Part shown: positions 3,493 through 63,228 of the stretch, piece by piece | Numbering within the stretch: the first letter of the stretch is position 1 | How the letters are laid out: every line of letters starts with the position of its first letter | NCBI RefSeq assembly: GCF_001194135.2 | Contig: NC_068983.1 | Coordinates: forward strand, 149,458,958-149,522,957 | Length of the DNA: 64,000 nucleotides | Direction: 5' to 3' | DNA from: Octopus bimaculoides | Lineage: Eukaryota | The notes under the pieces: generated by a model | Seen by the model: the letters and a program-made list of their open reading frames with translations, nothing else | What the model was told of the DNA's origin: nothing | The model's database searches: none | Position numbers and translations under genes: made by a program

Positions 3493-3763
3493 ATGGCTGC
3501 TACAAAGCCATCTCGACTGTTTTTATCTGGAGACCATCCTGGAAAGTACCAGCCTTTCTACTTCAGCAATGGAGATACTACCAATGAGGATATGTACCAG
3601 CCAAATGCTGCTTCTTCAGCCACCTATATGAAGTTTCTGCATTTAGTTGATACTCAGTTGTCAGATGATGAACCAAGTTCTTCACCACCACCACCAGCAA
3701 CAATGCAACAACAACCACCACAACCTCCATCTTCGTTGTCTCTTGACAATAAGCAAACAGATG
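3493..3763 (+). CDS. TPD52: TPD52-family gene, long N-terminal coding exon (probable alternative first exon): MAATKPSRLF...SLDNKQTD-G
   Basis: ATG at 3493 lies in the 3445-3897 ORF. It ends at the consensus donor GATG|GTAAGC (3764) in phase 1, matching the phase-1 acceptor at 33086 (G+GA=Gly). The sequence is Pro/Gln/Ser-rich and richer in GC than its flanks. Linkage across a 29-kb intron is inferred. Confidence 0.72.
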
Positions 3764-9440: not shown

Positions 9441-9695
9441 ATCATCATCATCATTTAACGTCCGCTTTCCATGCTAGCATGGGTTGGATGATTTGACTGA
9501 GGACTGGTGAACCAGGTGGCTACACCAGGCTCCAATCTGATTTGGCAGAGTTTCTACAGCTGGATGCCCTTCCTAACACCAACCACTCCGCGAGTGTAGT
9601 CGGTGCTTTTACGTGCCACCGGCACGAAGGCCAGTCAGGCGGTACTGACAACGGCCACGCTCGAAATGGTGTATTTTATGTGCCACCTGCACCTT
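9441..9695 (-). mobile_element. RTE 3'-tail copy (truncated LINE or RTE-derived SINE)
   Basis: Nearly identical to the 3' end of the RTE at 35715-35960. Confidence 0.85.
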
Positions 9696-19483: not shown

Positions 19484-19675
19484 AGTGGCTGTGTGGTAAG
19501 AAGCTTGCTTCCTAACCACATGGTTCCGGGTTCAGTCCTACTGCATGGCACCTTGGGCAAGTGTCTTCGACTATAGCCTCGGGCCGACCAAAGCCTTGTG
19601 AGTGGATTTTGGTAGACTGAAACTGAAAGAAGCCAGTTTTGTGTATATATACATATTTATATATTTGTGTGTGTA
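19484..19675 (+). mobile_element. SINE head of type A/F running into the gap
   Basis: Near-consensus ggagtggctgtgtggtaagaagcttgcttcctaaccacatggttccgggttcagtcc. Confidence 0.85.
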
Positions 19676-20072
19676 NNNNNNNNNNNNNNNNNNNNNNNNN
19701 NNNNNNNNNNNNNNNNNNNNNNNNNNNNNNNNNNNNNNNNNNNNNNNNNNNNNNNNNNNNNNNNNNNNNNNNNNNNNNNNNNNNNNNNNNNNNNNNNNNN
19801 NNNNNNNNNNNNNNNNNNNNNNNNNNNNNNNNNNNNNNNNNNNNNNNNNNNNNNNNNNNNNNNNNNNNNNNNNNNNNNNNNNNNNNNNNNNNNNNNNNNN
19901 NNNNNNNNNNNNNNNNNNNNNNNNNNNNNNNNNNNNNNNNNNNNNNNNNNNNNNNNNNNNNNNNNNNNNNNNNNNNNNNNNNNNNNNNNNNNNNNNNNNN
20001 NNNNNNNNNNNNNNNNNNNNNNNNNNNNNNNNNNNNNNNNNNNNNNNNNNNNNNNNNNNNNNNNNNNNNNNN
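19676..20072. other. Assembly gap (397 N)
   Basis: N run flanked by TA/TG microsatellites. Confidence 1.
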
Positions 20073-30493: not shown

Positions 30494-30897
30494 ATTATCA
30501 TCATCGTCGTTTAACGTCCGCTTTCCATGCTAGCATGGGTTGGACAATTTGACTGTGGACTGGTGGACCAGGAGGCGACACCAGGCTCCAATCTGATTTG
30601 GCAGAGTTTCTACACCGGGGTGCCCTTTCTAACGCCAACCACTCCGAGAGTGTAGTGGGTGCTTATACGTGCCACCGGCACGAGGGCCAGTCAGGCGGTA
30701 CTAGCAACGGCCACACTCAAAATGGTGTATTTTACGTGCCACCTGCACAGGAGCCAGTCCATCGGCACTGGCAACGATCTCGCTCAAATGTCTTTTCATG
30801 TGCCAGGGAGGCGACGTTGGTAACGATCAACGGCCACGCACGAAATGGTGTATTTTACATGTCACCTGCATAGGGGCCAGTCCATCGGCACTGGCAC
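30494..30897 (-). mobile_element. RTE 3'-tail copy with an internal duplication
   Basis: RTE tail; the unit cggccac..aaatggtgtatttta..ccagtccatcggcactggca occurs twice. Confidence 0.85.
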
Positions 30898-33085: not shown

Positions 33086-33219
33086 GAGACAATTACTATG
33101 ATCCTTTGAGCCCTCCTGCTTATGATACTGTCGCTTCAAGGGACCCTGAAACTCCAGTCTACCAAGATCCAGTTGATAAAGAACGCCAAGAAAAGGAATG
33201 GCAGGAAGAATTAAGCAAG
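33086..33219 (+). CDS. TPD52: TPD52-family exon (G)DNYYDPLSPPAY...ERQEKEWQEELSK
   Basis: Acceptor ctttctttttttctccttgtacag and donor AAG|GTAGAG. Only one frame is open. Its end matches the D52 'EEELRxELxK' lead-in to the coiled coil. Confidence 0.92.
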
Positions 33220-33818: not shown

Positions 33819-33967
33819 ATAGATGGAGAGATCCTCACTTTGCGACAAGTACTGACTGCAAAAGTACGCCGAGCAACAGAATTAAAACGAAAATTGGGCA
33901 TTACACCATTGCAGGAATTCAAACAAGATATTCAGAGTGGATTTCAACAACTCCGTGAAAGTGGAAC
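33819..33967 (+). CDS. TPD52: TPD52-family coiled-coil exon IDGEILTLRQVLTAKVRRATELKRKLGITPLQEFKQDIQSGFQQLRESGT
   Basis: Acceptor acttttag and donor AC|GTAAGT (phase 2). Clear match to the remembered D52 motif VEEEIxTLxQVLAAKE...ELKRKLG. Confidence 0.96.
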
Positions 33968-34654: not shown

Positions 34655-34678
34655 GGGAGGTGGTGCTTCTTCAATCTT
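34655..34678 (+). CDS. TPD52: 24-nt symmetric microexon A, (T)GGGASSI(L)
   Basis: Acceptor tttcttactttctcgatctcaaacag, donor GTAAGT, phase 2-2, no stop codon. Confidence 0.7.
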
Positions 34679-35625
34679 GTAAGTATCTCGCACTTGCTAG
34701 TAAATATTGTCTGTTATATAAATTATTTAAATTATATTAGTTTGCCTTCACTCATGTTCTTTAGTTGGTTTGAACCATTCTGGTTTCAGCTTTCTTTGCA
34801 AAGATAATTAATGACCTTGTGACCTTGTTTCAAATTATTGTCCATTACTAGAAAAAAGTCACTTCTTATTTGATGACTTCAAATTTCAGTCAAAAATCAT
34901 TTCCATTCCTACATTTGTGTGTGTGTCTTTCTGTGCAATCACATGTGTGCACATGCATGCACATGTGGTGTATAGATGCAGTCAGGGCCATGTGGTCAAG
35001 ACATTCACTTAGCAATCCTGTGTTTCTGATTTCACTTACACTACACAGGACACAAGACAAATGTCTTCTCTCATACCCTTGGATCAAACAAAGCCTCACA
35101 AGCAAAATTTGGTAGATAGAAACTGTGTGGGATGTGTGTATTTATGTATGTATGTATATATGCATGTATGTATATTGGCATCCGATGTCAGAATTAATGT
35201 ATAAACTGACTTTGTAGGATTGATCCTACATACATCAAGATCAGTTGATTGGGCCTTGTTTTCCTCTATAAGAAGATAAAATAAGGATTAGACAAAGAAC
35301 CGGGGCAATATAACTAACTCTTGAGGATGGTTTTCTATCATTATTCAATATACATCTGTATCAGTATTCATAGTAAAACTACAATAACTAAATTACATAC
35401 TAAATAGTAACCAATATTTAAGTCCATACAAATAATAATCCCACCAATCTTCCATAGTTTCTACTATAATAAGAGAGAATGAAAGCTTTATTCTAATTCT
35501 CTCCACGATTGAGTTTGATGGATAACATAACAATTATGAGTGAAATACATTATTTCATAATTCAAAGGTTAATAATAAAAGCACTACATACTCTTTATAT
35601 ATATTACCCTTACAAGCTATAATGT

Positions 35626-35712
35626 ATGTATATATATATATGTATGTATGTATGTATATATATATGTATGTATATATGTATGTATGTATATATATATATA
35701 TGTATGTATATA
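35626..35712. repeat. (TATG)n/(TA)n tract abutting the RTE tail
   Basis: Seen directly. Confidence 0.9.
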
Positions 35713-35714
35713 TC

Positions 35715-38410
35715 TCATCATCATCATTATCATTTAACGTCCACTTTCCATGCTAGCATGGGTTGGATGATTTGACTGAGGACTGGCAAGTCAGCAGGCT
35801 GCACCAGGCTCCAATCTGATCTGGCAGAGTTTCTACAGCTGGATGCCCTTCCTAACACCAACCACTCCGAGAGTGTGGTGGGTGCTTTTACGTGCCACCG
35901 GCATGACGGCCAGTCACACGGTACCGTTAACAACCTTGCACAAAAAGGTGTTTTTTACATGCCACCTGCACGGGAGCCAGTCCAGTGGCACTGGCAACGA
36001 CCTCGCTCGAATGATTTTCTAACGTGCCACCAGCACAAGTGCTAGAAGGTGACACTGGTAACAATTATGCTCAAATGGTGCTATTTACGGGCCACTAGCA
36101 TGGAAGCCAGACAGCTGCTCTGGCAATGAACACACTCAGACAGTGCTGTTAGTACTCCACTGGCGCAGGTGCCAGTCATCGAATATGGTTCAAATGCGAT
36201 TTCGATTTCACTTGCTCCAACAGGTCTTCGCAAGTCAAGTTAAGTGTCCAATGAAGGAGAGGTTGGCATGGGTGCCAGTCATCAGATTCGGTTCGATTTT
36301 GATATCAGATTTCAAATTCACTTGCCTCAACAGGTCTTCGCAGGCAGGTAAAGATACGAATAAGTGAGCTGGCTACACTTCTGGCAGAGGTCACAGCTTA
36401 TGCTCTCATTTGGCTTGCCAGGTCTTCTCATGTACTGCATATTTCCAAAGGTCCCGGTCACTAGTCATGACCTCGGTGAGGCCTAAAGTTCGAAGGTCGT
36501 GCTTCACCACCTCATCCCAGGTCTTCCTGGGCCTACCTCTTCCACAGGTTCCCTCAACTGCTAGGGTGTGGTACTTTTTCACATAGTTATCCTCATCCAT
36601 TCTTGCCACATGTCCATACCAGCGCAGTCATCTCTCTTGCACACCACAACTGATGCTTCCTAGGTCTAACTTTTCTCTCAAGGTACTTACACTCTGTCGA
36701 GTATGCACACTGACATTACACATCCATCAGAGCATACTGGCTTCGTTTCTTGCGAGCTTACGCATGTCCTCAGCAGTTACTGCCCATGTTTCACTGCCAT
36801 GTAGCATGGCTGTTCGTACACATGCGTCATACAGTCTGCCTTTTACCCTGAGTGAGAGGCTCTTTGTCACCAGCAGAGGTAAGAGCTCTCTAAACTTTGC
36901 CCAGGCTATTCTTATTCTAGCAGCTATACTTTCAGCGCACCCTTCTCCACTACACACTCGGTCATCTAAGTAGCGGAAGTTATCAACTACTTCTAGTTTT
37001 TTCTCCCTGGAGTGTGGCAAAGGTTGTTTTCTGCACATTTTCAGTGTTTATTGCTCCTGAGTATCTGCCACATACAAAAACTATCTTGCTAGTTAGCCTT
37101 CCTTTGATATTGCTGCACCTCTTATGTGTCCATATCTTACACTGGCTACATCTTATAGAGTTTCTACCTACGCCTTTTCTGCAGATCAGGCAGGACCATC
37201 TACCTGAAGGGGTTTGTGTCTTGTCTACCTTCCTACCTATTAGGACTTTGGTTTTAGCCAAATTGACTACCAGATAAGGGATCGGGGGACCTTGTCAAAG
37301 GCCTTCTCCATGTCAATGAAAGCCAGGTACAGAGGTTTATCTTTGGCTAGGTATTTCTCCTGCAGCTGTCTTACCAGAAATATAGCATCAGTGGTGCTTT
37401 TCCCTGGCATGAATCCAAACTGCATCTCGTCTAAACTAACTCTCTCCCTAATTAGTTGAGCTATGACCCTCTCCGTGACCTTCATTACCTGATTCAACAA
37501 CTTGACACCTCTGTAATTATTTGTATCTAAAGCGTCAACTTTACCTTTGTAGCAGTTGACTATGGTACTGCTACACCAGTCATTCGGTATGACTCCTTCA
37601 TGTATCACGTGGTTAACTATACGGGTGACTAGACTATAGCCGACACTGCCAGATATTTTGAGCCTCTCTGTGGTGATTCCTGATGGGCCGGGGGTTTTCC
37701 CTGTCTTCATACTCTTAATTGCTTTATCTACCAAGGTACTGTCAATTCGGATAGCTGGTCCCTCTGTTGGTTCGACATTCGGCAGACTCTCTTTCTCCCA
37801 TTCATTCTCTTTGGCATCTCCAAACCTCTCTCTTTGCAGCCTCATCTAGTGTAAGTGAACCATCATCCATGCGGATACATTTCTCTCCTACGACATCATG
37901 ATTCTCTCTCACACACTGTCTTGTAACACGAAACACCTCAAGTTTTTGGTCCTCACGGCACATAACATTGACGAATTTTTTCTTATCTGCTTCCCCTCTG
38001 GCTAAATAAACCTGTCTCCTAGCTTCTGTTTTGGCAGTCTGATACAATTCCCTGCTACCACTGTTCTTCCAGTCCTTCCAAGCCTGTTTCTTTTCTCTGA
38101 TAGCCCTGTCAACAACATTGTTCCACCACCACGTTGCCTTGGGTTGAGAGGGGACTCTGCATCATCCACAGATCTGGTCAGTGGCCTCTGGCAGGTTGTC
38201 CCATAGAAACCTCCAGTTGTCTTCCACATCATGTGATGCTATATCCCCTTCTATTTTGTCAAAGGCTTTGAGTAATACGTCTCTAAATCTCTGTCCATTC
38301 GCAGGATGTTTGAGCTTCCAGACCCTTCTCCTCCATACTGGTCGTCTTCTGGACATCCATTTAGCCCTGATCCTGAAGTCACTAACTACCAGTCTATGTT
38401 GTGGGGTACA
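35715..38410 (-). mobile_element. 5'-truncated, disabled RTE-clade LINE
   Basis: ORF2 fragments: PQHRLVVSDF, TWWW, YKGKVDALDTNNYRGVKLL, QFGFMPGKSTTDAIFLVRQLQEKY, KAFDKVP, KGRLYDACVRTAMLHGSETW, GRGRPRKTW. Then a repetitive 3'UTR and (GAT)n tail. Contains stops, frameshifts and an internal deletion. Confidence 0.95.
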
Positions 38411-39374
38411 TAAATACAATAGAACTTTTGGTATGTTTGTTTGTTAGATTATCCCTATTGCTTATAATTTCAAGTACCTTGAATGAGCATAGGTGCCATC
38501 CATTTAGAGAAAACCAATTCTAGTGTCAGACCAAGATATTTCGTACAGGATTTCTCTCATTTTTATGTCCCATATCAGTTTAGCGATGGATGTAGATTTG
38601 CTCTTGCCTGGGTCCTTGAATGAGTGGATATGATTATAAGATCCTTGTGTAAATTGAGACAATGTGGCCCCTATTTAGTGAAAGGTTTCAGTATTAGTGG
38701 TAGTTTTCAAAGTTCCAGTATGAGTGTAAATAGCCAGGAGTTCATGTAGAATACTGCATTTACAATACACTGGCTTTCTACCCTATCAGGACCTACAATG
38801 TGTGAGTGTGTGTGAGTCTTGACTTGTGTGCTGATTGCAAAGAAAATCACCAGTCATATTAACAGTGTCGTTTATTTGCAGTCTTTTGTGAAAGCATGGT
38901 AGATGGAAGAAACTGTGTGGAAGCCTGTCATGTTTATGTATGGGAGTCAGAAAGAGAGAACAACTGTTGCTAGGTTGTTTACACTCTTCATACCTTTGTA
39001 CTTTATCAAAAAGTGATGGATAGCATAGGTACCAAATTTTAAAATAAATACTGGGGTCAGTCTGTACAACTAAAACCTTTCGAGGCTGTGCCCTGGCATG
39101 ACCATAGTCCAATGACTGAAACAAGTTAAAGAATAAAAGAACACTCATACAACTAATCATGATTAATCACCTAACCCATGCCAGCATAAAAAGTAGATGT
39201 GAAACAATTATGATGATAAAGTGGAGGAAGATGTATGTGTTGTATATGTATCTGTGTGCTTGTTTACATTTGCACTTCTCCAAAAATTACTGAGCAGTGA
39301 CAACGTTGTCATTTCCCCTGTCAACAAGTCATCTGCTGGTTTGTGCCTCCAATGACACGTGGAATAAAAGATTT

Positions 39375-39740
39375 TTATTTGCAAAACAGGTAATATTTAG
39401 CAACAGGAAGGGCTTTCATCTATAAAAAAACCATGTTTATACTCAATAACACATGGCCTGACGTATTTTTCAGAAGAATGGAAATAAATGACACCACTTG
39501 TATGACAGTGACATTTGTTTACAACTATCATGTGATGTCGAGTCAAAAACACACATACATACATGCATGCACACACACACACACAACTGGCTTCTTCAGT
39601 TTCTGTCTACCAAATCCACTCACAGGCTCTGGTCAGACCAAGGCTATAGTAGAAGGCACTTGCCCAAAGTATTACTGTGAAACTGAACCTGAAGTCACAT
39701 GGTTGAGAATTGAACTTCTTAAAAGCACAGCCATGTCTGT
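39375..39740 (-). mobile_element. SINE type F
   Basis: Reverse complement of the type F head and body. Confidence 0.7.
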
Positions 39741-39955
39741 GCCCGCTTTGATGAACTCCCCAGTAATGTAACGATAGTAGTTTAGTAAAAGTCACATATC
39801 ATTAAATTATGTCTATTTGAGGCATAGTTCTTGCAAGCAGATGTTCTTTATCTGACTTGTTTTTCAAGTAAAGAGTCTCTTATTCCACACAGCTTCAAAT
39901 GCACAAAGTGATTGGACATTTTGTTGACAGCAGAAGCTGACAACACCACCACCTG

Positions 39956-39957
<2 letters not shown>

Positions 39958-39989
<32 letters not shown>
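39958..39989. repeat. (GT)n microsatellite
   Basis: Seen directly. Confidence 0.95.
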
Positions 39990-39990
<1 letters not shown>

Positions 39991-42079
39991 TTTATACATA
40001 TGCACTCGCAATTTGTGTTGTTGTTTTCTTTATAGTTTTTTTATAGTCTGTGTCTTATTTCATTTGATATTTATTGTATATTTGTGATAATTTAATAATA
40101 CTATATAACTTTTGTTATTGTTGTTGATTTCCTATGTGAATCACTTGTTTGTACCATTTAACACAAATTCACTTGTATTACTTAACGTAGTTGTAGTCTT
40201 TGTTTTCTGTCATTACAACACTGTTGGTCAACTTGTTTAAATAAATGCTTATTGCATATTTATTTGCATTCATATATTATATTCATATCTGAAACTTCCA
40301 TTTAATTCTGCATTTACAAAAGGCTGCCTAATTCGACTTTTTTTTTTTTTTTTTCGACATTTCATATTTCCATCATATGTCAGTAGTTTTCATTTACATC
40401 TGCTGACATTGTTATAGAATATAGTGAATCAATTACTATATCTATTACAAAACTTCCTTCCTCTAAAGATATATTGATGTACTACAATCAGTTAAAACAA
40501 TACTCAAAATCCTTTTCATCAATTTACAGTAATTAACTTTGATTTGTTGATGCTGATACATCCTATTCAGTCTGTAAATGAATATTATTACTGGTACCAT
40601 AAAGTCAAGGTACATACCTAGCAAACTGACCCAGCTTCATATTCCAGTTGTATCTGTTTCGCTTCAGTTAGTTTTTGTAAAGATATTAGCAACAATTTAT
40701 TCCAACTTTACCACACACATGTGCACACACCAACCTGAGGCCAATTGTCCATGTAAGAAGTCAATATTGCTCCATTCAATGACAATAAAAATCTTTATGT
40801 AGCAATTATATTTTTCCTGTTCAATTTATCTTCATTTAGAAAATGTGTCCTATAAGTTGGATTATAAATTTTAGATGTTTATCTTTTCCAAAAATATCAA
40901 AAGAAAATATTTCACCAAGTTGTAATTTTTCTGGTGATGATTTATGGCCAAAGATTTGGATGCTTACCTCAACCCCTAGTGCTATTTTGTTTCATTATTA
41001 GAAGCACTTCACTCTCAAATAGCTCTACAAATAGACTACATAGCTCTAATATGTATGACTAACTACTACTCACCACTATTTATTTGTAATGCTCATCTCA
41101 TATCCTTATCTAAGCACTTTTGAGGACTAAATTCCTAGCATTGATGGCAGAGCACTCCAAAAATTATGAACTTATATTCAATGAATAATATATTTGAGAA
41201 AACTATTATTCTCAATAATTTTCATTGTTAAACACATTTGCTGAAGCAGCTATGGATGTAATAATTCAGAACAATTTTAGAAACTTCAGTCTTACATCAT
41301 TATAGCTTTAGGATTGATGTTTTACTGAATAGAACCCTTAAAAATCAGGTTTTGTAATGCTTAATAAAAAGTTTTCTTCTGCTATGTTCATCAAAAACAT
41401 TTTTTAAGAGCATATTTTTGTCAGGTATTCTTCCTGATACTTAATGTATTAAGAAATATCTTCTCATGTTTACTCCTCAAGACAATTTTATCTGTGTGAA
41501 GATATAAAACCTACACTTCTTACTATACCCTATTATTGAAAGTCTGGTGTTTTATCCAAATACCTGATACTGCTTCACCTTTTAATTACCTGACATAAAG
41601 CAGTTAGTGCTAAGAGTATATGTGATATGAATCTCAAGAAGAGCATTTGTATTCTCCTGTATAAGAGGACATAAAATGGTTACAAGTAGTGCTCCTTCTC
41701 TTCCACCTCGGAAAAAAATATGTTTATTCACTAACAGACTCAGGCTTATTAAAATTGACAGAATTTTATGACTTATTTTCCTTGTATTAATGACATAAAA
41801 AAAATCATTAAGCATTTGATGAGTTAAATTTACCAATGTCATATTCAATTACTGCTAATTCTTTTCAGATAGTACTTTCTTATTAAGACATGATTTATCT
41901 CCTTGTCCTTCGGGGCTTTTCTTAATATCCTTTTGTAAAGTTCTCCATATACCTTTCAAATGGTTACTAGTTTGTCAGGTTTCCTTTGTTTATTTCACTA
42001 ATTGCTATTGCAATACTATCACACTAATTATATCTCAATCATTACTATTAAATCCAGAGGTACATTTGTTTTCAGTAGT

Positions 42080-42405
42080 NNNNNNNNNNNNNNNNNNNNN
42101 NNNNNNNNNNNNNNNNNNNNNNNNNNNNNNNNNNNNNNNNNNNNNNNNNNNNNNNNNNNNNNNNNNNNNNNNNNNNNNNNNNNNNNNNNNNNNNNNNNNN
42201 NNNNNNNNNNNNNNNNNNNNNNNNNNNNNNNNNNNNNNNNNNNNNNNNNNNNNNNNNNNNNNNNNNNNNNNNNNNNNNNNNNNNNNNNNNNNNNNNNNNN
42301 NNNNNNNNNNNNNNNNNNNNNNNNNNNNNNNNNNNNNNNNNNNNNNNNNNNNNNNNNNNNNNNNNNNNNNNNNNNNNNNNNNNNNNNNNNNNNNNNNNNN
42401 NNNNN
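42080..42405. other. Assembly gap (326 N) in the intron between microexons A and B
   Basis: N run. Confidence 1.
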
Positions 42406-42530
42406 AACCGGATGGCAACACCAGGCTCCAATCTAATTTGGCAGAGTTTCTACAGCTGGATGCCCTTCCTAACGCCAACCACTCAGAGAGTGTAGTGGGT
42501 GCTTTTACGTGTCACCCGCACGAAAACGGC
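42406..42530 (-). mobile_element. RTE 3'-tail copy emerging from the gap
   Basis: ggctccaatctaatttggcagagtttctacagctggatgcccttcctaacgcc. Confidence 0.8.
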
Positions 42531-42828
42531 CACCAAAAAGATTTTATAACATTTTTCTAACATTTTTCTGACATAATTTAAATATATACTTTAACCATGT
42601 AACACAAGCCTTCTGTAGTTTTTTCACTCTTATTATCTTTTATACATCCAACCACGTGCTTTCACATACCAACTTTCTCACCTATATATATATGTATATA
42701 TACACATAATGAAAGTACAATTTTTGGTAGTATGTTGAAGGTATTTCACATAATGATGTGTTTATGTTTTGTCTGATTTTTACTCTTATGGTTTGTTATA
42801 TTTGCTATCCTAATCCGTTTTAATTCAG

Positions 42829-42852
42829 GGCGGGTGCTTCTTCAAGTGATTT
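42829..42852 (+). CDS. TPD52: 24-nt symmetric microexon B, AGASSSD(L)
   Basis: Acceptor ctaatccgttttaattcag with a CTAAT branch-like motif, donor GTGAGT, phase 2-2. Splicing to 49864 gives SSSDL-YQKT, like QSDL-YKKT of vertebrate TPD52L2. Confidence 0.72.
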
Positions 42853-43360
42853 GTGAGTACTATGGAACAGTGTTGATCTTGCATGTTATGCTCTGTAGTG
42901 CATTTATTTTATAACTCATCAGCTAGTCAGTATAAACAATTTTTTAAAATACATTCAGTGCACATAAAATATTTCCTTTAAAAAATGTCTACAATGCAGC
43001 TATTTCTGCTAGCTTAATAAATAGCTTTCTAGTTACATATGAATTTATGTTTACTGAATTGTCTATAGATTTGGTAAAATTTGTGGATTTTGTATTGCTA
43101 TTATTATAAGAGTATTATTATTATTGTTAATATGAAAACATTATGATTGTAATTATAAAAAATATTATTAATCAGTAATATGGCAGATTAATTCAGTAAC
43201 TGTATCTTTCTCACTCAAAAATAGGCTTTGAGCCTTCTCAAATTATTATTGCTTTTCATCCTTTCGGAGTCAGATATAAATATCAGTCAAGTACTGGGGT
43301 CAATGTAATCGACTTCCCCCTCCCTTCAAAAACTGCTGGCCTTGTGCCAAAATTTGAAGC

Positions 43361-49863: not shown

Positions 49864-49965
49864 ATACCAGAAGACATCTGCTGCCATGAAGACTGCTTCT
49901 GAGAAAACTACATCTGCCATTTCAGTGCTTGGTGCTTCAGTAAGCAAAAAATTTGATGAAATGAG
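49864..49965 (+). CDS. TPD52: TPD52-family exon YQKTSAAMKTASEKTTSAISVLGASVSKKFDEMR
   Basis: Acceptor ttttttctatag, donor AG|GTAAC, phase 2-2. Matches the remembered YKKT...GQKxSAA...GS.I.KK..DM pattern. Confidence 0.95.
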
Positions 49966-51407: not shown

Positions 51408-51468
51408 AAATTCTCAGACATTCAAGACAGTGGAAGAACGAGTGGAGAATGCTTACACTAATGTAAAG
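51408..51468 (+). CDS. TPD52: TPD52-family exon (R)NSQTFKTVEERVENAYTNVK
   Basis: Acceptor ttttattatttcag, donor AAG|GTGAGT. Matches the D52 motif NSPTFKSFEEKVEN. Confidence 0.95.
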
Positions 51469-52332: not shown

Positions 52333-52368
52333 ACTTCAAAGTCAATTGAGAATTTAAAAGATAAATTG
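52333..52368 (+). CDS. TPD52: 36-nt symmetric cassette exon TSKSIENLKDKL
   Basis: Perfect TACTAAC at 52308-52314, acceptor tattctgtttag, donor TTG|GTGAGT, phase 0-0. The peptide resembles D52 KSFEEKVENLKSKV. Confidence 0.75.
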
Positions 52369-57826: not shown

Positions 57827-57868
57827 GGTACCACTGAGGTGAAGCCATCAGAAGAGTTTTCAGCAAGT
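57827..57868 (+). CDS. TPD52: 42-nt symmetric cassette exon GTTEVKPSEEFSAS
   Basis: Acceptor gattccatcttcag, donor AGT|GTGAGT, phase 0-0, open frame. Confidence 0.68.
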
Positions 57869-62129: not shown

Positions 62130-62530
62130 GCGCAGGCATGGCTCTGTGGTAAGAAGCTTGCTTCCCAACCACATAGTTCTGGGTTCAGTCCCCCTGCGTG
62201 GCACCTTGGGCAAGTGTCTTCTACTATAGCCTCAGGCCGACCAAAGCCTTGTGAGTGGATTTGGTAGATGGAAGTTGAAAGCAGCCTGTCATATATATGT
62301 ATATGTATGTATATTTTATGTGAGTATGTGTTTGTCCTCCACCATCACCTGACAACCAATGTTGGTGTGTTTACCTTCCTGTAACCTAGCAGTTCAGCAA
62401 AAGAGATTGATAAAATAAGTACTAGGCTTACAAAGAATACGTCTTGGGGTCGACTGCTTCGACTAAAAACCCTTTAAGGTGGTGCTCCAGCATGACCACA
62501 GTCAGGATGACTTAAACATGTAAAAGAATA
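62130..62530 (+). mobile_element. SINE type A
   Basis: Full-length copy with tail ggtggtgctccagcatgaccacagtc. Confidence 0.85.
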
Positions 62531-63105: not shown

Positions 63106-63228
63106 TCTCGAGTGAAAGGTAGCAAATCCAACCAGAGCCTCAATGAAAGTTTCCAGGCATCCAGTGAACCAAGTACTCCCCGATCAGAGGACAATCCTCC
63201 TCTGCCCGAAGAAAAGGTGCCCCTGTAG
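63106..63228 (+). CDS. TPD52: TPD52-family terminal coding exon SRVKGSKSNQ...PEEKVPL*
   Basis: Acceptor ctttcattttccattttcag, phase 0, 40 codons then TAG at 63226-63228. It begins SRV, like SKV in vertebrate D52 last exons. The U-rich 3'UTR follows. Confidence 0.9.
   Translation, partial: SRVKGSKSNQSLNESFQASSEPSTPRSEDNPPLPEEKVPL

Follow-up and report, generated by a model that had tools for sequence, protein, structure and literature searches.

Two neighbouring 24-nucleotide cassette microexons in the TPD52 gene of Octopus bimaculoides

We analysed a window of 64,000 nucleotides (nt) from the genome of Octopus bimaculoides (NCBI RefSeq assembly GCF_001194135.2, contig NC_068983.1, positions 149,458,958 to 149,522,957 of the forward strand; positions below are counted from the first letter of the window), which contains two neighbouring 24-nt microexons, here called A and B, within the gene TPD52. 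The exons of the window, when spliced together with A and B, reproduce the RefSeq protein XP_014780770.1 residue for residue, and two forms that skip the microexons correspond to the O. bimaculoides proteins XP_014780772.1 and XP_014780775.1. The product also matches the Pfam TPD52 profile (PF04201) with 87.9 bits against a cut-off of 25, over residues 123-244, which span the coiled coil and the downstream helices. Because the assembled products equal the RefSeq proteins and match this profile, we identify the window as the O. bimaculoides TPD52 locus; the gene is the single invertebrate orthologue of vertebrate TPD52/53/54. An exhaustive protein search with a 50-amino-acid (aa) exon query retrieved a 299-aa TPD52 of Octopus vulgaris that is 98% identical and carries GGGASSIL between ...SGT and YQKT.

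A and B lie in a 16-kb intron between two constitutive exons, all on the + strand. The upstream exon (33819-33967) translates as IDGEILTLRQVLTAKVRRATELKRKLGITPLQEFKQDIQSGFQQLRESG(T), matches an mRNA contig at 100%, and encodes the end of the coiled coil and an AH1-like helix; it ends ...RESG(T), leaving two bases of a codon. The downstream exon (49864-49965) begins YQKTSAAMK... and runs to ...SVLGASVSKKFDEM(R), with the full translation YQKTSAAMKTASEKTTSAISVLGASVSKKFDEM(R); it is likewise present in the mRNA contig and encodes an ALPS-like amphipathic helix (hydrophobic moment 0.39-0.41). Microexon A (34655-34678) is GGGAGGTGGTGCTTCTTCAATCTT and encodes GGGASSI(L), and microexon B (42829-42852) is GGCGGGTGCTTCTTCAAGTGATTT and encodes AGASSSD(L). 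CAG precedes both exons (the acceptors read ...ctcaaacag for A and ...ttaattcag for B), and they are followed by the consensus donors GTAAGT and GTGAGT, respectively. Both are in phase 2-2 relative to the flanking exons, and because each completes the split codon and itself ends in TT, skipping both, including A, including B or including A and B are all frame-preserving; the longest product reads ...ESGT[GGGASSIL][AGASSSDL]YQKT.... A direct read of the window agrees with the original prediction, a note made from the sequence alone, in the sequences, coordinates, phase and consensus donors of both exons. A and B thus have the properties of cassette microexons: they are no longer than 27 nt, are a multiple of three, have AG...GT flanks, are spliced into mRNA and are either included or skipped.

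The splicing of A to B is seen in RNA from O. bimaculoides itself. The RNA-derived Logan contig SRR32601320_9361 (2,585 nt, run SRR32601320) encodes the exact A+B protein; its alignment with the window falls into nine colinear blocks distributed across 60 kb, and the coding sequence is identical at 924/924 nt. The contig contains the junctions 33967>34655, 34678>42829 and 42852>49864, contradicting the possibility that only direct 33967>49864 splicing takes place, and an 88-nt string made of the end of the exon at 33967, A, B and the start of the exon at 49864 is found in it exactly. A contig of such structure can only derive from spliced RNA, which makes it direct evidence for the stacking of A and B. 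The RefSeq match and the mRNA contig also bear out the proposal, made from raw sequence alone, that these are two real coding microexons of the TPD52 family and that this is their host gene. An assembly gap of 326 N (42080-42405; no strand) interrupts the A-B intron 424 nt before the B acceptor and is coding in no known isoform; because the mRNA joins 34678 directly to 42829, the length of the gap is irrelevant to the reading frame. In none of the isoforms from the three Octopus species are A and B separated by additional residues, and nothing suggests a further rare exon inside the gap, where one could still lie.

To describe how the two exons are combined, we tallied the inserts of the 44 cephalopod proteins recovered by database searches. 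Twenty-one have no insert, 14 have both, four have only GGGASSIL, four have only AGASSSDL and one has NTATTTDL. The A+B isoforms span all three Octopus species (O. bimaculoides, O. sinensis and O. vulgaris); the A-only proteins are from O. vulgaris (P0002, P0156, P0277 and P0282 in our set), and the B-only proteins are from O. vulgaris (P0155, P0276 and P0278) and O. sinensis (isoform X3, P0268). Because none, A, B and A+B all occur, the exons behave as independent cassettes and not as mutually exclusive ones. At the level of annotation these exons are already known, as RefSeq and European Nucleotide Archive (ENA) isoforms in three Octopus species; examples are XP_029633458.1 and XP_036356988.1 of O. 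sinensis and CAI9719552.1, CAI9719557.1 and CAI9719560.1 of O. vulgaris. We conclude with high confidence that A and B are genuine neighbouring, frame-preserving 24-nt cassette microexons of TPD52 that are separately included, which yields four protein variants differing by 0, 8 (GGGASSIL), 8 (AGASSSDL) or 16 residues.

A and B have in common the 13-mer GGTGCTTCTTCAA, the core that the original prediction had picked out. It is present in exactly two copies in the 64 kb, those in A and B, even when one mismatch is allowed (~0.16 expected by chance), and the core lies outside any dispersed repeat: there are only these two copies in the window, and a nearby repeat stops short of B. We scanned the 16-kb intron for AG followed by 3n nt (9-60 nt, open in this phase) and GTRAGT; besides A and B, a single further candidate emerged, 12 nt long (38790-38801) and without isoform support. 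This total of three is uninformative by itself, because simulation gives two to three such candidates by chance. The similarity of the candidates is another matter: in 3000 simulated introns the longest k-mer common to two non-overlapping candidates was 11, versus 13 in A and B, so that the likeness of A and B is beyond chance (0/3000 simulations) and comes with equal length (24 nt) and equal phase (2-2). Given that both encode the peptide GASS, the probability of identical codons is ~0.011 under TPD52 codon usage; because this is improbable, the nucleotide identity suggests that RNA-level constraint has retained the sequence or that the two copies have been homogenised.

A shorter part of this sequence recurs once more in the gene. 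The 8-mer GGTGCTTC has only three copies in the 64 kb (34662, 42833 and 49931), all on the + strand and all encoding an in-frame Gly-Ala-Ser of TPD52; they sit in A, in B and, within the constitutive exon that follows, in the ALPS-like VLGASVS. This triple occurrence could be codon bias or could be a hint that the microexons derive from the exon at 49864-49965.

Counterparts of the octopus exons are found in cuttlefish. A 1,198-nt Logan transcript (run ERR12945499), 98-100% identical to the genome of Acanthosepion pharaonis, carries the 24-nt insert GAACACTGCCACAACAACTGATTT at the same junction and in the same phase, encoding NTATTTDL. At the A. pharaonis locus (CAHIKZ030002379.1, L004 in the coordinates that follow) the equivalent intron is 20.5 kb, and the strict scan gives four candidates, two of which are 24 nt long. 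One is a B-like exon (L004:50143-50166) that encodes NSATTTDL and has a GTAAGT donor. The other, which is unannotated, is an A-like candidate (L004:46045-46068) located 4.1 kb upstream of the B-like exon; it reads GGCTGGTGCAGCGTCTGCAGTTCT, encodes AGAASAVL, and has an extended pyrimidine tract, with GTAAGT as its donor. Compared with octopus B, AGAASAVL has 5/8 residues in common; with octopus A it has 4/8, and 15/24 nt at the nucleotide level. Among open 24-mers drawn at random from the cuttlefish intron, a match this good has p ~1e-4, and an intron should contain only ~0.2 strict 24-nt candidates. The sequence of the A-like candidate is intermediate, beginning AGA... as octopus B does and ending ...[IV]L as octopus A does. 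Because the cuttlefish intron holds a B-like exon and, upstream of it, an A-like candidate that chance would rarely produce, both exon types, in the same order, seem on this comparison to predate the octopod/decapod split.

Three other observations concern these comparisons. The deposited A. pharaonis gene model (P0158) skips the YQKT exon and reads through the intron, and looks mis-built. In the octopus intron, an in-frame DSASSTDL at 38153-38176 resembles the cuttlefish B-like peptide at 5/8 positions; this stretch is flanked by neither a usable acceptor nor a usable donor, lacks a pyrimidine tract, and is probably a chance likeness. Cephalopod junction patterns had no match in a metagenome collection, where the control for the skipped form was also unmatched, making this collection uninformative.

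We think it probable, from these sequence features, that A and B share a common origin. One ancestral microexon would have given rise to A and B by tandem duplication before the octopod/decapod split, and since the introns are saturated between the octopus and cuttlefish lineages, selection would have acted on the exon itself. Several points weigh against parts of this account. Homology between A and B stops at the exon edges, with none found in the flanking introns, and both peptides are low-complexity, so that duplication and convergence towards a short peptide of low complexity cannot be told apart cleanly. In the flanks, octopus A and the A-like exon of cuttlefish show no similarity, nor do B and the B-like exon, and the collections searched contain neither a transcript nor a protein with the A-like exon. 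As to separate inclusion, the forms with A alone or B alone come from gene models annotated in sister species and not from inspected transcripts, and the spacer role discussed below is purely our inference from the peptides. The duplication proposed by the original prediction is therefore likely in view of the core, the length, the phase and the cuttlefish A-like exon, though not proven: flanking homology is absent, and the comparison does not show one exon turning into two, as both exon types already appear to be present in cuttlefish.

Of the other explanations, the one that survives best accepts an old pair and makes only the 13-nt identity in Octopus recent, through gene conversion between A and B or through a shared RNA-level constraint such as a splicing enhancer. 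The core is common to octopus A and B, and each cuttlefish orthologue matches it at only ~7-9/13 positions; the synonymous sites within the core are identical; and microexons are known to rely on dense cis-signals (PMC8797185). There is, however, no flanking homology to seed a conversion, and we regard this explanation as possible without favouring it.

Somewhat less likely still, in our estimation, is that A and B have separate origins, such as two exonisation events, and became alike through selection for a Gly/Ala/Ser linker and preferred codons. The complete lack of flanking homology is what this would predict, the codons GGT, GCT, TCT and TCA are common in TPD52, where GGTGCTTC is also found in the next constitutive exon, and the cuttlefish A-like and B-like exons are identical at only 2/8 residues. 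But an exact 13-nt match within two 24-nt exons was never approached in the simulations, and identical codons remain improbable (p ~0.01) even given the same four residues. Length and phase, moreover, are equal in both lineages, and the cuttlefish A-like exon lies between octopus A and B in sequence. Common origin thus remains the reading that we prefer.

The position of the insert invites comparison with other members of the family, ~290 of which we aligned by anchors. In all of these the A/B site falls between ...[ST]x[TA] and YQKT/YKKT, matching the ins2-type site. A 20-aa cassette (YQKTNEKLxQLNEKIxQxxA and relatives), which most other bilaterians splice in, is found at this same site in molluscs, arthropods and vertebrates. 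Among the types of cassette, molluscs (YQKTNEKLHQLNEKIxQSSA type), lepidopterans and spiders have a 20-aa exon, some arthropods have inserts of 9-10 aa, teleost tpd52l2b has a 16-aa exon and vertebrate TPD54 has ins2. Other short inserts at the junction are SGLGIFTTPA, YGIGALPASA and FPGIFSSTA in arthropods (P0187, P0092 and P0198) and YKWTTNV in the snail Gigantopelta (P0012). From these alignments, the post-coiled-coil junction appears to attract small cassette exons repeatedly. An ins2-like 20-aa exon was not found by tblastn in the octopus or cuttlefish intron, nor among cephalopod isoforms, and cephalopods appear to be without the 20-aa amphipathic cassette.

The vertebrate cassette has a described function. 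In human TPD54, ins2 makes up most of the region Q101-V120. This region is the amphipathic helix AH2, which together with the ALPS motif AH3 mediates the curvature-sensitive membrane binding of TPD54 (PMC9270247), and ins2 alters TPD54 self-interaction (PMC12896813). The cephalopod exons are like ins2 and the bilaterian 20-aa cassette in being alternative cassettes at the same junction before YQKT/YKKT. In contrast to ins2, which is a single 20-aa amphipathic exon, they are two exons of 8 aa each, Gly/Ala/Ser-rich and non-amphipathic, with no sequence similarity to it past SDL. The hydrophobic moment of the A+B insert is 0.01-0.13, versus ~0.40 for human ins2/AH2; in octopus, the counterparts of AH1, the ALPS motif (TSAISVLGASVSKKFDEM) and AH4 have moments of 0.5, 0.4 and 0.43.

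We think it improbable that the microexons are shrunken remnants of an ancestral 60-nt ins2-type cassette, such that SDL|YQKT in octopus and QSDL|YKKT in human TPD52L2 would be true homologues; the original prediction had noted the echo. The human sequence used in this comparison, 206 aa long, contains QSDLYKKT and agrees with all 19 residue numbers given in PMC9270247. The remnant reading is favoured by a common site, bounded by the ...SxT/A codon and YQKT, by the apparent absence of the 20-aa cassette from cephalopods and by a [ST]x[ST]DL tail found in octopus, cuttlefish and human. The likeness is limited to three residues, however, the amphipathic character would have been wholly lost, and the cassettes of other molluscs, which are closer relatives, end at this site in ...T/S-x-A and not in DL. 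Because closer relatives end differently, the SDL likeness is probably coincidental, and it is not supported as homology.

That A and B form a mutually exclusive pair of which one is always chosen, like classic tandem-duplicated exon clusters, could have been expected from their adjacency, common core, equal length and equal phase, but with tandem A+B in the mRNA contig and isoforms carrying both exons or neither, it is already refuted. The original prediction, which is essentially correct and had the exons adding a Ser-rich linker, left open whether the copies were mutually exclusive or stacked; the mRNA contig and the RefSeq and ENA models uphold stacking, and the same A+B transcript rules out exclusivity. 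A and B resemble tandem exon duplications in being adjacent, in having identical length and phase and in their common core, and differ from them in not being mutually exclusive and in that their homology is restricted to 13 exonic nt.

The regions around the two exons differ in their motifs. Upstream of B there is a TGC at 42803-42805 (-26) and a branch-point-like CTAAT at 42810-42814 (-19), both on the + strand and both as originally predicted, as is the lack of a TGC within 60 nt upstream of A. A Rbfox-type TGCATG lies on the + strand at 42880-42885, 28 nt downstream of the B donor; it is a motif match only and is not conserved in cuttlefish. A has neither a CTAAT nor a downstream TGCATG like those of B. 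In cuttlefish a TGC is present at -5 of the B-like exon and absent from the 60 nt upstream of the A-like exon. These counts are compatible with chance, and the pattern lends no statistical weight to the different regulation that the original prediction thought possible. The cis-code of eMIC-dependent neural microexons includes a UGC close to the acceptor and a CUAAY branch point (PMC8797185), and the motifs upstream of B fit this code, which we offer as a lead only. A and B are like the eMIC microexons of Srrm234/SRRM4 in being at most 27 nt long and frame-preserving and in contributing to a disordered linker in a membrane-trafficking gene, with B having the UGC and CUAAY; they differ in that A has no UGC and in that both have strong consensus donors.

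The remaining TPD52 exons in the window are all on the + strand and were placed by the spliced assembly and, unless stated otherwise, by the mRNA contig. An alternative first coding exon, one of several (MAATKPSRLF...), is at 3493-3763, and a coding exon DNYYDPLSPP...EELSK is at 33086-33219. Downstream of the exon encoding the ALPS-like helix are a coding exon at 51408-51468 (NSQTFKTVEERVENAYTNVK) and the last coding exon at 63106-63228, which ends ...PLPEEKVPL followed by the stop codon. Between these lie two cassettes used in some isoforms only: one of 36 nt at 52333-52368 (TSKSIENLKDKL), seen in annotated isoforms and in the mRNA contig, and one of 42 nt at 57827-57868 (GTTEVKPSEEFSAS), seen in annotated isoforms. 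Because these cassettes also vary among annotated isoforms, the TPD52 gene contains a cluster of short alternative exons. The annotated 5' exons MSVPSKDDEMFSPESTK, MMAESIGLSSYAIEFDTDID and MHHEQVKK and the 12-aa cassette AMNDEEEYMLLF were not found in the window. The O. vulgaris TPD52 gene spans 151 kb, and the Argonauta gene has a range of 114 kb; given the missing 5' exons and the length of the O. vulgaris gene, the O. bimaculoides gene evidently begins far upstream of the window.

The window also contains repeated sequences. A dispersed repeat of ~100 nt (42429-42530) adjoins the assembly gap upstream of B, ends ~300 nt short of B, and is probably responsible for the gap. Further copies of it, 84-93% identical, are at 9533-9628, 35812-35912 and 30589-30683 and, on the - strand, at 21142-21050 and 61792-61712. 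Fragments of a repeated open reading frame, xWHLGQVSSTIASG..., are found at 53-115, 19543-19605 and 62196-62258 and on the - strand at 59785-59753, one of them just before a second assembly gap (19676-20072); these fragments are probably a transposable-element family.

These observations, combined with knowledge of the family, suggest what the microexons may do. The insert sits after the post-coiled-coil helix (AH1-like, ITPLQEFKQDIQSGFQQL) and ahead of the YQKT...ALPS-like membrane-binding region, and on the best-supported reading the microexons would contribute one or two Gly/Ala/Ser spacers there, flexible and non-amphipathic. Such a spacer could change the distance and flexibility between the dimerising coiled coil with AH1 and the curvature-sensing helices, and B would in addition contribute a conserved [ST]3-D-L motif, a possible site for an acidophilic kinase. 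It is conceivable, though as a whole doubtful, that all of these elements belong together: a tandem duplicate that arose before the coleoid radiation would have replaced the ancestral AH2 cassette, its combinatorial spacers, 0, 8 or 16 aa long (with a hydrophobic ...IL or a phosphorylatable ...SSSDL in the 8-aa forms), would tune a curvature-sensing vesicle protein, possibly in neurons, and RNA-level selection would have preserved the 13-nt core in Octopus as a splicing enhancer common to both exons.

In the literature we found nothing specific on TPD52 microexons or on cephalopod microexons, and no paper that discusses A or B; the database records list isoforms only, and nowhere did we find A and B described as a related pair of microexons, their conservation in cuttlefish noted or their site equated with that of ins2. 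What this analysis adds to those records is junction evidence in O. bimaculoides itself, the exclusion of mutually exclusive use, the placement of the exons at the ins2/AH2 site, and evidence, including an unannotated cuttlefish exon, for a pair older than the octopod/decapod split. A and B do not constitute a new kind of system, and their biological import is modest, but they could serve as a small test case for the evolution and recognition of microexon pairs. They provide a clean invertebrate example of the combinatorial use of microexons in a vesicle-trafficking protein, and they mark the junction that follows the TPD52 coiled coil as a recurrent site of alternative cassettes across bilaterians.

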